Shown in pieces: positions 27,701-62,998 of a DNA stretch of 64,000 nt (its first letter is position 1; every line of letters starts with the position of its first letter). The notes under the pieces are model-generated. The model was not told the origin of the DNA. It was given only the letters and a program-made list of their open reading frames with translations, and did not search any database. A program made the position numbers and the translations under genes. Source of the stretch: Trichosphaerium sp. ATCC 40318 (taxonomy: Eukaryota; Protista; Tubulinea); the NCBI GenBank assembly GCA_038496445.1, contig JALMLS010000441.1, forward strand, positions 1 through 64,000, given 5' to 3'.

Positions 27701-28305
27701 GTACTAGATCCTGATCAACGATATGCACAAAGTGGAGTATCTGGAGCAATGGGTACGTTGGAAAAGATTTATTATTCATTAGAAAGGAGGTGTAACTGAG
27801 ACTTTTGCTTTTTTTTAGCGTACATGGCGCCAGAGGTCATTAAAAAGGATTCCTATGGAGTCAAGGCTGATGTTTACTCTTATGGATTGTTGGTCCAAGA
27901 GATGCATACATTGCAAACACCTTGGTTTGGCATGACTATTCATCAGCTTGTTATGGCTTTGGAGAGAAAGGAGAGGCCAAAAGTATCAACGTATGCGACA
28001 AATGTTGTTGCAAAGTTGATTACAGACTGCTGGGCTGAGGACCCTAAGGATAGACCTTCTTTTAAGAGTGTTGTTGATACACTTAAACCTTTTGTTACTA
28101 TTCCTAATGGCGCACATAACCAAGAAGGTGCACTTGAGTATGATGAAGAGATTTTAGATGGTAAGCTTTTTTTTTTTTTTTTTGCGCAGAAGTTTTTATT
28201 AAATCTCTTTGCTTGCTTGCTAGTAACTTATGTTTTTTGCTCCTAGAAATGGATACAAGTATTGGTGGGTATATTAAAAAATCTGAATTTGAAGACTTGA
28301 GTTAA
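24734..28305 (+). CDS. Kelch-repeat + PB1 + tyrosine-kinase-like (TKL) protein kinase
   Basis: Kelch blades: KLYVFSG, HSAVSYNDKMYAFGG, PAPRSQHSSVVVGDKLYIIGGYDG, DVWCLDL. PB1: IMVKCSL..FNYKHDDDWINLDDDNDLALAI. Kinase: IGSGFFGKVY, VACK, LRHPNIVLFIGA, HRDLNSGN, DFGLSK, YMAPEV, DVYSYG, CWAEDPKDRPSF. Confidence 0.88.
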
Positions 28306-29601
28306 TGCCACGTGATAAAATAATCCATTTGTAAAAGTAGTGTATGAACCAAAAAAAAAAAGTTGTATTTGAACCAGAATCTTGTTTTCGTTCACGGTTG
28401 TGATTTGTCAGTTTATATTTGAAACAATTCACCAGACTAAAATTCTACTCCGTGTAAGTCTTGGGACGTATAGGTTCGGAATGAGACGATTCCGGGATTC
28501 TAGAAATGGTCTGACTTTTTGACAATATCAGCCAATCGTGGACCGGAAAAAATATTCCTGAACCGTATGCGTCTCCTCGGATATTTATCGGTGCCTAATG
28601 AAAACTTTAGTACTAATACCAGTAATAAATTATCGCTGTCTAAGGTGTTTTTAACCGAAGAAAAGATGTGCATTTATAGCGTGCAACAAGAAACGAGATT
28701 GGATCTGTGGATTTTTTTTTTCTTTCGAAGGTCATGGAAATTCGTCGTGGAGGGGAACGCTGAAAACGCCGAATAGGTCTCGGAAAACAACACGCAAACG
28801 TATGTAAATGCGATACAGATAAATAAAGGCAGTTTTGGTTAAAAAAAAACGGTTGGATTTTTGATACTATTTCTATTTATATTCAATACGCGTGGACGCA
28901 ATAAAATACAGTGACGGCTCTTTTAAGAGCGTATTAGGTTCAACGAGTAATTATTTGTACACTTTCAACAACGAAAAGGCGCCCCAAAGCACAGAAACAA
29001 CAAACCAATAATCGTGTTGGAGGTTTTTTTTTCAAACCGACAACCTCAGCACACAACGGGTATGTAGATAGCTACGATAGTTACAACGGTGTTCTAGGTG
29101 CCTTGAAAACTGAATATTTTCGCTATAGACCTCCAGTCTTACAACCGTGTAGCCTAATATAGCATAAAAGAAGAAAGCACTTTGAGGCACCAATCCAAAA
29201 AAACTAAAATTCTGCCAAAAAAGGCAGGTACAAAGAATTTTTGTGTGGTGTGCCCTAGAAGTCGCTTCTCTTATCCCTGTTGTCAGGTCTTCTATCACGT
29301 AACCCCTATGAAAAATGCGTTAAAAACATAGCATAGGCAGTGTTAATCGATCTGCAGCTTGAAAGATGTGATGATGTAACTACATCATGCATTGTCGAAT
29401 ACTTCTATTCTGTACACCACAGCTGCTTACTGCAGTATGGTGAACAAATGGTTCAAATTTGACGTTGCAGGACCACCAACCTGCAGAGACTACATTCAAT
29501 GCATTTAGCCTCCTTGGGAACAAGACATGTCTTAAGTACCTTGGTGGGGATGAGCACACTGTACTCTACACACTTTACCACAACCAAATATTTGGTTGTG
29601 T

Positions 29602-30316
29602 TGTAACTGTTCTCTTCTATCATTATAACACCCATAGCAGGTGTAGAAATGTTAATCGAGTTCTGGGTTACAGACATAGTACCCTAACAGGTGCATGCCA
29701 TCAGTTGCCTCAACATCTTTTGTGATGTAGGGGTGCTACAACTTTTACCCACAAGGAACGGCACTTGTCCAAGTACTTATGGAGGAAAGACACCAATGTG
29801 TCAAGAGTGATGCCCTTAGTAGGCAACATTTGAAAGCACCAATGCTCTTGTTCTCTTCTAGCATTATAACACACATCCCAAAAAAGGAAAAGTGTAGAAA
29901 TGCTAATCGAGTTCTGAGCAATGTTACACCAATGTGCAAGTCACATGGTTAACATTACACAAGGTATGTGTTAAAGTCCTTAATGGGCTACAACAAACCA
30001 TATGAACATATAACTGACCTTTGTTCTCTTCTAACATTATAACACCCATAGCAGGTGTAGAAATGTTAATCGAGTTCTGGAGCTAATACACAGTGTGCGC
30101 TAACTTGGATCACTTCTTCTAGCATTATAACACTTCTTCAAGGAGGTGTAGAAATGCTAATCGGGTGCTAAGCCAGGTATGCATTTACACAAGGTATGTA
30201 TTGAAGTCCTCAGTGGGCAACAACTAAACTACCTGTGTATGAAAGTTATTATCTCTTCTAGTATTATAACACTTCCCATCAAGGAGGTGTAGAAATACTA
30301 ATCGAGATATTGTAAC
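29602..30316 (+). repeat. Five dispersed copies of a ~65-80-nt stem-loop module (TTCTAGCATTATAACAC-loop-GTGTAGAAATGCTAATCG)
   Basis: Copies at ~29602-29672, 29843-29920, 30018-30081, 30104-30172 and 30245-30316. Arms are conserved; loops and spacers differ. Confidence 0.9.
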
Positions 30317-30918
30317 ACATCATTACAGTCCTTAGCATGTACAAATGTAACATGCCTGGGTGGATGAAAGGAATCAATGATTCCAACTAAGTAATTCAAG
30401 AAACTGTATGACACGTCTAGGGAACACCTAAAGGAAAGACAAGTTCTAGTACTTGGGTGGGTAACAGATGTGATGCATTGACTCAATTGACGGAAAGGCA
30501 CTCAAGCCAAGTACATCAACATGAGCATGCAAGTGTTACAGCTTCAACCTCGACAAGGAAAGGGACCAGCCGAGTACTTGAGAGGAAAGGTAATTCATAC
30601 GCTGTGTAACACATCTAGGTAACACCTAAAGGAAAGACGAGTTCTAGTACTTGGGTAATAGATGTGGCTGGTCTGAATGGCAATGGCAGATTAAAGGAAA
30701 AGGCAGTCAACCCAAGTACGTTTAGGTAGTGGTACACCTTCTAACTCATCTAGCAAAACAAGACGGAAATGGTTGGGCATTACAAAAGGTATGTAGTGAA
30801 GCCCTTATGGATGTATGACTAACCTTTATTTTATACCATAGTAGCGCACTAAAGGATGGGAGGATCACACTTGGACAAAGGTACAGCCCGTACTGCTTAC
30901 TGGCGTTTAGGTCAAATA

Positions 30919-31390
30919 CAAGATGTAGGGGTTCAATGAGGAGGTACAAGTTCATTTGCTAACTAGCTGCGCTATACACACTAATGATGAAGGTGTGTAT
31001 AGCCAATTGATCCAGGGAATGCAGTTTTAGGTACTAGCACGCAAGATGTCGGTGTTCAATGAGGAGGTGCAAGTTCATTTGCTAACTAACTGCGCTATAC
31101 ACACTATTGATGAAGGTGTGTATAGCTAATTGATCCAGGGATATGCAGTTTTAGGTACTAGCACACAAGATGTCGGAGTTAGTTCATTTGCTAACTTAGC
31201 TGCGCTATACACACTATTGATGAAGGTGTGTATAGCTAATTGATCCAGGGATATGCAGTTTTAGGTACTAGCACACAAGATGTAGGGGTTCAATGAGGAG
31301 GTGCAAGTTCATTTGCTAACTAACTGCGCTATACACACTAATGATGAAGGTGTGTATAGCCAATTGATCCAGGGTTATGCAGTTTTAGGT
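30919..31390 (+). repeat. Tandem repeat, 4 x ~123 bp, each copy containing a perfect 11-bp hairpin
   Basis: Units start at caagatgt (30919, 31042, 31166, 31276; unit 3 has a ~15-nt deletion). Each contains GCTATACACAC-tawtgatgaag-GTGTGTATAGC. Confidence 0.93.
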
Positions 31391-32854
31391 GCTCATCTTG
31401 TGAGCAGATGTAGATGTCAGGTGGTTCTATTATTGGCATTAACTATAAACATGAGGGTAAGTTGTGGTGTAATTGATGGTAACTTCTGTGCAGGTTGGCT
31501 AAGAGATGTTGGCAAAGGGATACAGATTTGGGTGCAAGTGGTGGCTTAGCATAAGTACGTGTTTATTGGATGTTTAAAAGTGTATTTACTAACTGTTCTA
31601 CCTTCGCAACTTGGCTTACAATAGGTAGGTACAAGGTGGGGTATAGATTCATAGGATGGTGCGTTAGGCAGGATTCACAGGATGGATGGCTATTGGGATT
31701 GTTACACCTACTGCTCATTATACGACTGTGGTGGTATCTGGACTGTAGTCTGTTCTTCATCCTCTTAGCACATGCCAGCTGGGTCAGTTTTCACTGGTTG
31801 ACCGAGTTTAACACGTGTTGAGATGACAAAGGAACAGATTACAGGGCAGTAGGTGTAACTCACAATAGGGTAGGTACAATGGGATGTGGATGCACAGGAT
31901 GGGTGCAGTAGATGTAATCATTAGGTAGGTTTCACAGGTTGGCTTTGGGCGATAAGGGACGATGGCTTGCAGAACGGTACATATGTAGTGTCCTTTAATA
32001 ACTTACTTTCTATTCTATATGTAGGGTTTCGCTGGTTCACACAAGGGGGTTGTTGTAATTAATAAAATCCTTTTTCTTCTTTTAATTAACATTTCACAAG
32101 TTTTCCTTTTTTTTTCTTTTCTTTCATTAGCATGCTTACCGCAGGGACAGGCAATGTAAAGCAACTTTAAGGGCGGCATAACTAAATCAAACAAAAAACC
32201 TAAAAGTTGCTTCTTGCTATTGCATTCTGAGACTAAATACATCTATGGGCCAGTTTCAAGGCCAATCCTTGTATACTTTTTTTTTACATCTCCTAGATGA
32301 CTTTATGCATCAAAAAAGTAGAGCACCACTTCGCTATCACGTGATATTAAAACAGTTTCTAGATTTAACATAGTTACATGCTACTAGTGTCTGGGAATGA
32401 AGAAGTGAATTTGGTGCCAGGAGGTTGCTTGCTAATCGGCATTGCCTATTGCTGAATTAACCAAACAAACTAGTATCTTCAGCCTATTGAAGTTGTATTG
32501 CTCCACATTTCTATGTTCAGTACATTGATAAACTGCTTGAAGTTTATGATTATATTTCACATTTAGTTCACCTTTTTGTGTACTTTATTACCAACACTTC
32601 AACTCTTGAACACTATTTCCGGAATTGTTGAAGTGAGATTTGATAACTACTGCTTTGATTGTCATGTTCAAAATAGTTTTTGAAGTGTAAGATGGTTACA
32701 AGGTGACACAAAGATTTCTTTTAACCAGTAATAGCAAAATCAAATTTCGTGCTTTTCTCGAAACTCTCAAGAAAGCGATGCTGCCCAAATGTTTTTGATT
32801 TTCCTGGTATTGATAAGGACAATTTCTTTCCCTCAAGTCCAAAAAGGATAAACA

Positions 32855-34506: not shown

Positions 34507-35796
34507 TCATTTCTCCATGTTTTTTATCGTCAACCCACATGTTTTGTATACAAATCGATTTTTTTTTGTTTGTACACCATCAAACCATGTGGTTTGATTC
34601 ACTAATCGTCCTGTTTCATGCCAAACCTTTTTTTCGCCATGAAGTTTACCATCAACCCACATGCTTTGTATCTTTAGTTGCCCATTTTCATACCACTCTT
34701 TCATTTCACCATGTTTTTTATCATCAACCCACATGCTTTGTATCTTTAGTTGCCCATTTGCATACCACTCTTTCATTTCACCATATTGTATATCATCAAT
34801 CCACATGCTTTGTGCACTAAGTTTTCCACTTTCATGCCACTCTTTCTTTTCGCCATGTTTTTTATCATCAACCCACATGCTTATTTCCTCGAGCTGTCCA
34901 CTTTCATACCAATCTGTTTTTTTACCATGGCATTTACCATCAACCCACATGCTTTGTGACCCGAGTTGTCCATTTTCATACCACTCTTTTTGTTCACCAT
35001 GACATTTACCATCAACCCACATGCTTTGTGACTTGAGCTGTCCATTTACATACCACTCTTTTGTTTCACCATGTTGCTTATCATCAATCCACATGCTTGT
35101 TGCCTCGAGCTGTCCACTTTCATACCAAGCGTTTTCTTTACCATGACATTTACCATCAACCCACATGCTTTGAAATTGTAGTTGTCCATTTTCATACCAC
35201 TCTTTTTGTTCACCATGTTGTTTATTATCAACCCACATGATTTGTGCCTCGAGCTGTCCACTTTCATACCAAGCTTTTTCTTTACCATGACATTTACCAT
35301 CAACCCACATGCTTTGTGACTCGAGTTGTCCATTTTCATACCACTCTTTTTGTTCACCATGTTGTTTATCATCAACCCACATGATTTGTGCCTTGAGCTG
35401 TCCACTTTCATACCAAGCGTTTTCTTTACCATGACATTTACCATCAACCCACATGCTTTGAAATTGTAGTTGTCCATTTTCATAGAACTCTTTTTGTTCA
35501 CCTTTTTTCTTTCCATTTATCATCATACATTGTAGCTTGATATTTCCATTCTCATACCAAACTTTACATGGACCTGTCCTATATTGTTTAATACATACTT
35601 TTCCACTTTTATACCACCCTATCCATTGTCCTTTTCTTTGTAGTGTTGCATCAAAATGTGTATTGATTGCTGCTCTTTTTGAGAGTGTATGGAATTTTGT
35701 GAATGCTTCAATGTTGAACGTGCAGAAATATGTTTGAATTTCACATGGAAGATCAAGTACAGTAAAAGCCAAGCTCTTTGTTGAATTTGTTTCCAT
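34507..35796 (-). CDS. Intronless F-box-like + MORN_2-repeat protein
   Basis: N-terminal VLDLPCEIQTYF (F-box-like), then ~14 repeats of 24 aa (WYENGQLxxQSMWVDGKxHGExKE). The 72-bp units form a 144-bp higher-order period. Confidence 0.9.
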   Translation of the reverse strand: METNSTKSLAFTVLDLPCEIQTYFCTFNIEAFTKFHTLSKRAAINTHFDATLQRKGQWIGWYKSGKVCIKQYRTGPCKVWYENGNIKLQCMMINGKKKGEQKEFYENGQLQFQSMWVDGKCHGKENAWYESGQLKAQIMWVDDKQHGEQKEWYENGQLESQSMWVDGKCHGKEKAWYESGQLEAQIMWVDNKQHGEQKEWYENGQLQFQSMWVDGKCHGKENAWYESGQLEATSMWIDDKQHGETKEWYVNGQLKSQSMWVDGKCHGEQKEWYENGQLGSQSMWVDGKCHGKKTDWYESGQLEEISMWVDDKKHGEKKEWHESGKLSAQSMWIDDIQYGEMKEWYANGQLKIQSMWVDDKKHGEMKEWYENGQLKIQSMWVDGKLHGEKKVWHETGRLVNQTTWFDGVQTKKNRFVYKTCGLTIKNMEK

Positions 35797-61780: not shown

Positions 61781-62998
61781 ATGCAATCTGTAGACACCCT
61801 CATACACCTTCCAATAGAACTATTAGTGCGTATTCTTAGCTACAATCTAGACGTAGACATGGACTCTATATCATGTGTTTGTCGTTTGTTGTCGATTATC
61901 GCCGATCAACACATCCAATACATCTCAACTCGTTACATAAGGTTAAAAACAAAGACAGACGTTTACAGACTTTTACTGTACCCACGATTACTCACAAAGG
62001 CAAGAATAACATGCTACCCGTCCATATCGAACAGAAGACTATTAAAACTATCAGGTGTACGTAATATAGCTTTAAGGAGAGCTAGTAGAATCACAGATAA
62101 GGGTCTATCTGCGCTCTTGGGAGTACATTGCATAGATTTATCCGGTTGTCATTCGATCACAGGTGAAGGGTTTAAAGCGTTATCTGGAGTACATACAATA
62201 AAACTCAGTGACTGTCGTCGTATCACAGATGAAGGTTTATCCTATCTGTCTGGAGTTTATTATATTGACTTGTCGGATACCTTTGTTTCTGATAAAGGAA
62301 TTCAAGCGTTACAAGGTGTTCACACAATAAACTTGTCAATGTGCTCAAGAATAACCGATAAGGGAATATCTTATCTATCAGGTGTTCACACTATAAGTCT
62401 CAAGTATACAAAGGCAGGTGATGTTGGGATCAAATCGCTTTCTGGTGTACATGCCATTGATTTAGAAGACTGTGAGAATATTACAGATGAAGGTATTAAA
62501 TCATTGGCTGGTGTTCATACAATTAACTTACAGTACACTCATGCTACTGATGATAGTATTAAATGTCTTTCTGGTGTTTATAGTATAAAGTTAAGTGAAA
62601 CGGAAGTAACAGATGAAGGTTTAAAATCGCTCTCTGGCGTTCACACTATTTGGTTGGTAGATTGTAAAAATATCACAAATCTTGGTGTTAGAGCTTTAGC
62701 TGGTGCTCATACAATTAATCTTCAGTATTGTCATCAAATAACTGACTCTGGTATTGTACCTCTTGCGGGTGTACATACTATAGGATTATCGGCAACCAAT
62801 GTTACAGATAGAGGCGTAAAAGCTCTTGTTGGTGCTCATACTATTTATTTAGGTCAAACAAAAGTCACCAATGAAGGTGTTGAAGCACTTGCAAAAGAAG
62901 CTGATACAATATCATTACATAATTGTCGTGGAGTAAATGCACTTGGTGTTAGAGTTATATCTAAGGCTTTTTTACAAAGAAGATTGGTAGGGTTGTAA
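61781..62998 (+). CDS. Intronless F-box + leucine-rich-repeat protein
   Basis: LIHLPIELLVRILSY (F-box), then ~14 repeats of LSGVHTIxLxxCxxITDxGxxx; single 405-aa ORF. Confidence 0.92.
   Translation: MQSVDTLIHLPIELLVRILSYNLDVDMDSISCVCRLLSIIADQHIQYISTRYIRLKTKTDVYRLLLYPRLLTKARITCYPSISNRRLLKLSGVRNIALRRASRITDKGLSALLGVHCIDLSGCHSITGEGFKALSGVHTIKLSDCRRITDEGLSYLSGVYYIDLSDTFVSDKGIQALQGVHTINLSMCSRITDKGISYLSGVHTISLKYTKAGDVGIKSLSGVHAIDLEDCENITDEGIKSLAGVHTINLQYTHATDDSIKCLSGVYSIKLSETEVTDEGLKSLSGVHTIWLVDCKNITNLGVRALAGAHTINLQYCHQITDSGIVPLAGVHTIGLSATNVTDRGVKALVGAHTIYLGQTKVTNEGVEALAKEADTISLHNCRGVNALGVRVISKAFLQRRLVGL

Follow-up and report, generated by a model that had tools for sequence, protein, structure and literature searches.

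Gene content and structure of the locus

The stretch of DNA that we analysed, called the window throughout, is 64 kb long, and at 29350-32070 it contains a hairpin-rich domain of about 2.7 kb, read here on the + strand, that is free of open reading frames (no ORF of more than 88 amino acids). The domain lies between two convergent protein genes: a kinase gene on the + strand, whose stop codon is near 28305, and a MORN-repeat gene on the - strand (34507-35796). After correction for GC content, it ranks first in the window for structure among 2.45-kb blocks on the + strand. The introns of the kinase gene are 66-84 nt long, of the GT-AG type and T-rich at their 3' ends; both the MORN-repeat gene and an F-box/LRR gene at 61781-62998 (+) are intronless, and the proteins encoded by these two genes have their nearest look-alikes, at about 33% identity, among giant viruses (Nucleocytoviricota) and the transcripts of marine protists (MMETSP). 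These likenesses hint at a protist host of giant viruses, perhaps an amoeba, as the source of the DNA. No informative domains were found in the further ORFs of the window.

At the start of the domain, spanning 29602-30316, stands an array of five paralogous hairpins of about 70 bases each on the + strand. The same domain holds several other hairpins. A single hairpin at 29385-29472 folds with -32.5 kcal/mol on the + strand and -26.4 on the - strand, and another, at 29920-29960, carries the central-stem words of the array, AATGTTA and TAACATT, in reversed order. A two-copy module (30389-30561 and 30587-30757; 70% identity) forms a hairpin on the stem CACRTCT/AGATGTG, in which an A to G difference gives a G.U pair on the + strand only. 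Farther along, four tandem units of 110-124 nt (30949-31393) each include a perfect hairpin of 11-12 bp (30969-31004, 31092-31127, 31202-31237 and 31326-31361), with AUGAUGA or UUGAUGA in the loops. These units can be loosely aligned to the five-copy hairpin and, on their 5' side, likewise differ by TAGC versus TAAC; judging from their sequences, they may be its distant relatives. A long hairpin at 31738-31849 has 43 pairs, 8 of them G.U, with folding energies of -51.2 kcal/mol on the + strand and -41.9 on the - strand, and its predicted shape makes it the best candidate small-RNA precursor of the locus.

Two additional elements deserve description here. A three-copy module (D4; 29955-29997, 30185-30227 and 30780-30822) contains AAG/GTATGT, which strongly resembles a 5' splice site; its GTATGT sites are at 29966, 30196 and 30791. 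Two of its three copies are 86% alike within otherwise diverged spacers, and about 65 nt separate the module from hairpin copies 3 and 5, which lie downstream of it. Behind the third D4 copy come ACTAAC, a T-rich stretch and TAG (30791-30842); on another reading, what lies downstream of this copy is a TATA-like word, some 32 nt ahead of position 30868, at which the contigs of run X1 (described below) start. Beyond the domain, a 28-nt stretch at 32085-32112 shows 82% complementarity to copy 2, across its loop and 3' arm, and within this stretch 11 nt complement the 3' arm of copies 1 and 3 without a mismatch. It may be a coincidence, the relic of an arm or a site that resembles a target.

Five hairpins with a common fold

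A reading of this DNA from its letters alone (the sequence-only reading) had proposed that a stem-loop with two internal loops recurs five times, and both a pattern search and the folding of all five copies bore this out. A gapped pattern of the two arms gave exactly 5 matches on the + strand, against 0 expected from 100 shuffles, and a search with the 3' arm that allowed up to three mismatches returned the same five sites and nothing more in the 64 kb. The common fold, found in 5/5 copies, consists of a 3-bp helix, a 3x3 internal loop, a 7-bp central helix, a second 3x3 loop and an apical helix of 4-8 bp, closed by a variable terminal loop of 4-19 nt; a basal stem is present in four of the five copies. 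The lower internal loop is UUC x AUC and the upper AUA x AGA, in which the middle U.G can pair. From the start of one hairpin to the start of the next, the distance is 91-241 nt.

Copy 1 (29602-29672, +) has the basal stem TGTAAC/GTTACA and scored 92.1 bits against a covariance model. Copy 2 (29843-29920, +; 75 bits) combines the basal stem TGCTC/GAGCA and the central stem TAGCATT/AATGCTA with a 19-nt loop, and copy 3 (30019-30086, +; 85.4 bits) has the central stem TAACATT/AATGTTA, with a compensatory A-U pair, above an unclear basal stem. The apical stem of copy 4 (30103-30178, +; 84 bits) is lengthened to 8 bp with G.U pairs, and copy 5 (30245-30316, +; 85.5 bits), whose central stem TAGTATT/AATACTA includes a compensatory U-A pair, has a long basal stem. 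Folding z-scores were -5.5 for copy 5, -4.4 for copy 2, -3.9 for copy 4, -2.0 for copy 1 and -1.3 for copy 3, and copies 1 and 3 folded no better than about 4-13% of shuffles.

Two details of the sequence-only reading had to be trimmed. Its statement that the basal stems differ in sequence yet still pair holds for four copies, whereas copy 3 (z -1.26) lacks a convincing basal stem. It had also given each copy a CTC/GAG helix; copy 4 has UUC/GGG instead, held only by two G.U pairs, although pairing as such is retained.

Conservation and pattern of substitutions

Between copies, the 21-nt 5' block is 91% identical and the 20-nt 3' block 93%, compared with pairwise identities of 38% in the loops and 36-40% in the 60-nt flanks, which is the level of random alignment. 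On these sequence comparisons the hairpin copies are old, their arms forming conserved islands amid diverged surroundings.

We inferred seven substitutions in the arms from the alignment, six of which keep pairing. The covariation that had been claimed for the central stem was confirmed: a G-C pair became A-U in copy 3 and a C-G pair became U-A in copy 5, in each case through two events that make up one compensatory pair. In the lower helix of copy 4, C has become U across from a G, and A has become G across from a U; both changes leave wobble pairs that exist on the + strand only. The sole disruptive change is found in copy 1, in which the central stem TATCATT/AATGTTA contains a U.U mismatch. 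The internal loops had been called invariant (TTC x ATC and ATA x AGA), and indeed 0 of their 12 positions are changed in any of the five copies.

For the structure described above, 91.4% of the cells of the alignment pair, versus 81.5% after shuffling (0/500 shuffles reach 91.4%), and only 33-44% of cells pair when the registers are slid. Seven pairs are changed on both sides, five of them in the basal helix; because that helix is poorly aligned, the covariation argument rests mainly on the two central-stem pairs.

It is well supported that the array is under purifying selection, acting on two arm sequences of about 20 nt and on their pairing. The conserved arms, the pair-preserving changes (6/7) and the unchanged internal loops argue for selection on an RNA hairpin, and on this point the sequence-only reading stands. 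Neutral decay, DNA-binding half-sites and palindrome-correcting template switching are disfavoured because none of them predicts the observed substitution pattern; template switching would also have erased the internal loops. The hairpin family is very probably a functional structured RNA, and a putative role as small-RNA precursors is the most likely one for its members.

Origin of the copies

In a self-comparison, 29854-30074 resembled 30115-30306 and 29608-29911 resembled 30022-30306, a pattern which suggests that the array grew by duplication of units of two and three hairpins. The 59-nt cores of copies 1 and 3 are identical at 58/59 positions, with unrelated flanks on either side. Moreover, loop similarity pairs copy 4 with copy 5, whereas unit order pairs copy 2 with copy 4. 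Because of the shared core and of this conflict between loops and order, gene conversion is likely to have acted as well.

Strand and run X1

The G.U pairs had been taken to fix the RNA strand, which was too strong a claim. Variable G.U pairs in the lower helix of copy 4, and in the apical extensions and basal stems of copies 4 and 5, do point to the + strand, and copy 4 reaches -26.3 kcal/mol on the + strand versus -19.9 on the - strand. Copies 2 and 3, however, have a small energy advantage on the - strand, and the invariant loops mirror each other, with a U.G in the upper loop on the + strand and in the lower loop on the - strand. By folding energy alone, the strand is ambiguous for the five hairpins of the array. 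Among 13 hairpins of the domain the + strand was the better one in 10, with summed energies of -293.6 versus -260.7 kcal/mol. The + strand is therefore favoured as the RNA strand but not fixed.

We also compared the locus with run X1, a public data set from 2015 in the form of assembled contigs, whose type is only guessed as RNA and in which DNA may be present. Its contigs cover 30868-31897 at a word depth of roughly 5-48 and include the four tandem hairpins and the 31738-31849 hairpin. No contig falls at 29350-30867, and hence none over the five hairpins of the array, a gap that proves nothing. The contigs come in two forms about 5% apart and of similar depth, which represent either two diverged alleles or a second genomic copy of the 30868-31897 part; some continue into unrelated sequence after 31033 and 31267. 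In the variant form of the 31738-31849 hairpin, the differences are concentrated apically and spare the lower stem, where a single C facing G has become U; the fold still reaches -48.6 kcal/mol. From the X1 contigs, part of the ORF-free domain probably exists as RNA.

Comparison with databases and the literature

A covariance model built from the five copies, run without filters on both strands of the 64 kb, recovered those five copies and no sixth; the next match had an E value of 0.33. Rfam 15 gave 0 matches at gathering score in the window, in agreement with the earlier suggestion that the motif is undescribed. A permissive Rfam search (E up to 10) produced only chance-level matches, such as, on the - strand, SNORA69 (27 bits; gathering score 47) and mir-576 (18.7 bits; gathering score 99). 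ARAGORN found 0 tRNA genes in the window, and with them no sign of a tRNA-derived element. The arm pattern and that of the neighbouring hairpin had 0 matches in collections of metagenome, bacterial and archaeal genome and viral contigs. A literature search found the arm sequences in none of 8.4 million papers and, for the neighbouring hairpin sequences, a single chance 12-mer only. Nor do the arms occur in the supplements of a survey of amoebozoan miRNAs (PMC11014262).

Several known RNA motifs were considered and rejected. Conserved C (RUGAUGA) and D (CUGA) boxes, as in box C/D snoRNAs, are missing in and beside the five copies; for an H/ACA snoRNA, the 3x3 loops are too small to form a pocket and no ACA is found at a constant distance; and the tandem GA pairs of a K-turn do not occur, as read by eye. 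The Pumilio element is matched by UGUAGAAA at 7/8 positions, which are partly paired. The likeness of the 3' arm to GUGUAGUA, the branch-site sequence of U2, was put down to chance, since their registers disagree.

Possible functions of the array

Our leading interpretation, put forward tentatively, is that the array may be a putative polycistronic precursor of miRNA-like small RNAs of about 21 nt. The five hairpins would be paralogous units of one + strand non-coding transcript between the convergent protein genes. A Dicer-type enzyme would cut each hairpin into a duplex of about 21 nt composed of the two conserved blocks, the 5p block ending in ...ATTATAACAC and the 3p block beginning with GTGTAGAAAT..., and one or both strands of the duplex would then be loaded into an Argonaute. 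Taken as a whole, this would be a lineage-specific miRNA-like cluster that expanded via local duplication and gene conversion.

This interpretation is favoured first by the arms themselves: blocks of 20-21 nt, the size of a small-RNA duplex, are paired along their whole length and border directly on a variable loop of 9-19 nt, and their identity of 91-93% is set against 36-40% in loops and flanks. It is favoured as well by the two compensatory pairs and two wobble-preserving changes, by a spacing of 91-241 nt like that in polycistronic clusters, and by the presence of other hairpin families and of the 43-bp hairpin in the same domain, where the X1 variant differences spare the lower stem of the latter. 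The domain has no ORF and the window no scattered copies, which again favours it. In all five copies (5/5) the fold is one hairpin whose two arms each carry one candidate strand, as the miRNA criteria applied in PMC11014262 ask of a precursor. Amoebozoan miRNAs are mostly 21 nt long and come from precursors of 75-125 nt, according to the amoebozoan survey (PMC11014262).

Duplex quality counts in both directions, and other observations weaken the miRNA-like reading. In the duplex, 15/20 positions pair (14 Watson-Crick and 1 G.U), leaving 5 mismatches and 0 asymmetric bulges. The plant-type criterion for miRNAs, said to be that of Axtell and Meyers in 2018, allows up to five mismatches with up to three in asymmetric bulges, and the animal criterion, with which the names of Axtell and Meyers 2018 and Fromm 2015 are connected, asks for at least 16 paired nucleotides in the duplex; ours is exactly at the plant-type mismatch limit and one pair short of the animal limit. 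Pairing of 15/20, below the animal criterion, is weak for a Dicer substrate, and copies 1 and 3 fold weakly. In old miRNA paralogues the star arm usually drifts. Here neither arm varies at its unpaired nucleotides, which fits sequence-specific recognition by a protein better. The array's own antisense aside, no target site better than 4 mismatch-equivalents was found in the window, and the arms are absent from the amoebozoan miRNA lists (PMC11014262). Finally, X1, whose type is only guessed as RNA, is without a contig over 29350-30867.

The main rival, possible if somewhat unlikely, is that the hairpins are a repeated, putative protein-binding module, that is, docking sites on a scaffold or sponge long non-coding RNA which is not cut into small RNAs. 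Recognition would be specific for both sequence and shape, through two invariant 3x3 loops set 7 bp apart. The substitution pattern lends itself to this explanation, since all 12/12 internal-loop nucleotides are invariant and the helices change only in pair-preserving ways, as if the loops were read and the helices were spacers. The five same-strand copies in an ORF-free, highly structured domain would suit such a transcript, and duplex pairing of 15/20 is poor for a Dicer substrate. On the other hand, the exact small-RNA size of the conserved blocks would have to be a coincidence. No candidate protein or known motif was found, the GA/GA tandem pairs of a K-turn being absent and the Pumilio-like match of UGUAGAAA being only 7/8 and partly paired. 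The X1 contigs show no transcript over the array, although that gap proves nothing.

An element that acts at the level of DNA is improbable. The copies could then be sub-terminal repeats bound by a transposase, a tiny mobile palindrome of the fold-back or MITE type, or neutral leftovers of tandem duplication without an RNA function. The 59-nt block that copies 1 and 3 share (58/59) between unrelated flanks is what a mobile element or a conversion event would leave, a 20-bp motif recurs in inverted pairs much as tail-to-tail transposase sites do, and X1 shows no RNA over the array, with the same reservation about its gap. Yet the edges of the 59-nt block bear no target-site duplication, the unfiltered search of both strands of the 64 kb found no further copy (next match at E 0.33), and the window contains no second array and no convincing terminal inverted repeat; candidate terminal inverted repeats at 30333-30407 and 32352-32383 were weak collinear matches with poor alignment and were discarded. 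In addition, the differences between left and right half-sites are systematic and conserved, the changes are compensatory or of wobble type, and palindrome-correcting template switching would have erased the internal loops too. Dispersed copies, terminal inverted repeats and target-site duplications, by which a transposon or MITE is recognised, were thus not found within the 64-kb window. The sub-terminal repeat of a transposon, which the sequence-only reading had set up as its counter-case, is unlikely; its disfavour is a statement about the 64-kb window, in which there are no further copies.

Least probable of all is a role in splicing, or a coupling to it: the hairpins would be putative structures within a spliced non-coding transcript, located in its introns or hiding its splice signals. 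The 5' splice-site-like AAG/GTATGT some 65 nt upstream of copies 3 and 5, a pyrimidine tract that runs into TAG in the 5' arm of copies 2, 4 and 5, the branch-point-like CTAAT of the 3' arm, the three D4 copies (two of them 86% alike within diverged spacers) and the nearby kinase-gene introns of 66-84 nt with T-rich 3' ends would fit it. Against it, the AG is missing from copies 1 and 3, neither spliced contigs nor joints occur in X1, whose contigs start at 30868, chance is expected to produce arms rich in pyrimidines with an AG behind them, and the third D4 copy is equally readable as lying upstream of the TATA-like word and the contig start at 30868.

Significance and comparison with known systems

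The locus could be a multi-family polycistronic small-RNA locus in a unicellular eukaryote outside animals and plants, or else an undescribed protein-binding module with twin 3x3 loops on a protist long non-coding RNA, a claim that we regard as possible but doubtful. If the former were true, the architecture of animal-type miRNA clusters would have arisen independently, with five paralogues and further hairpin families; the latter, if true, would be equally new. Bona fide miRNAs have been described in only about 15 protists, and most of these are single, species-specific hairpins, according to the amoebozoan survey (PMC11014262). A family of five paralogues under structural selection would offer a test case for the birth and expansion of small-RNA or scaffold-RNA families in a unicellular lineage; it also adjoins other hairpin families within one ORF-free locus.

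Inverted-pair motifs invite comparison with the sub-terminal repeats of CACTA/hAT-type DNA transposons and with MITE fold-backs. Like the sub-terminal repeats, the array repeats a motif of about 20 bp as inverted pairs, with several such pairs in some 700 bp. Unlike these elements, it is accompanied in the 64 kb by no terminal inverted repeats, target-site duplications, second array or transposase ORF, and its substitution pattern is RNA-like.

The Xist A-repeat and the roX stem-loops are hairpin modules of scaffold long non-coding RNAs in animals, with known protein partners. The array resembles them in its short conserved stem-loop copies, variable spacers and invariant unpaired nucleotides, in what would here be a putative transcript. 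It differs from them in that it has no sequence similarity to either and is known from DNA sequence.

Compared with miRNA clusters, the array is distinguished by a duplex paired at 15/20 positions and by a pair of symmetric 3-nt loops in which neither arm varies. In the consulted part of the survey of Edelbroek et al. 2024 (PMC11014262), most amoebozoan miRNAs are unique to one species, two paralogues are mentioned for two miRNAs of A. lenticulata, and no array as large as five hairpins is reported. At the same time, animal clusters of the mir-17~92 type and the amoebozoan miRNAs of that survey (PMC11014262) are alike with the array in consisting of related hairpins on the same strand, here 90-240 nt apart, and the length of its precursors is near the low end of the amoebozoan range of 75-125 nt given there. 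The array also shares with miRNA clusters the conserved arms of about 21 nt, the variable loop, the compensatory changes in the stem and the intergenic, ORF-free setting. The hairpin family is undescribed, yet it falls within a known kind, that of clustered paralogous non-coding hairpins.
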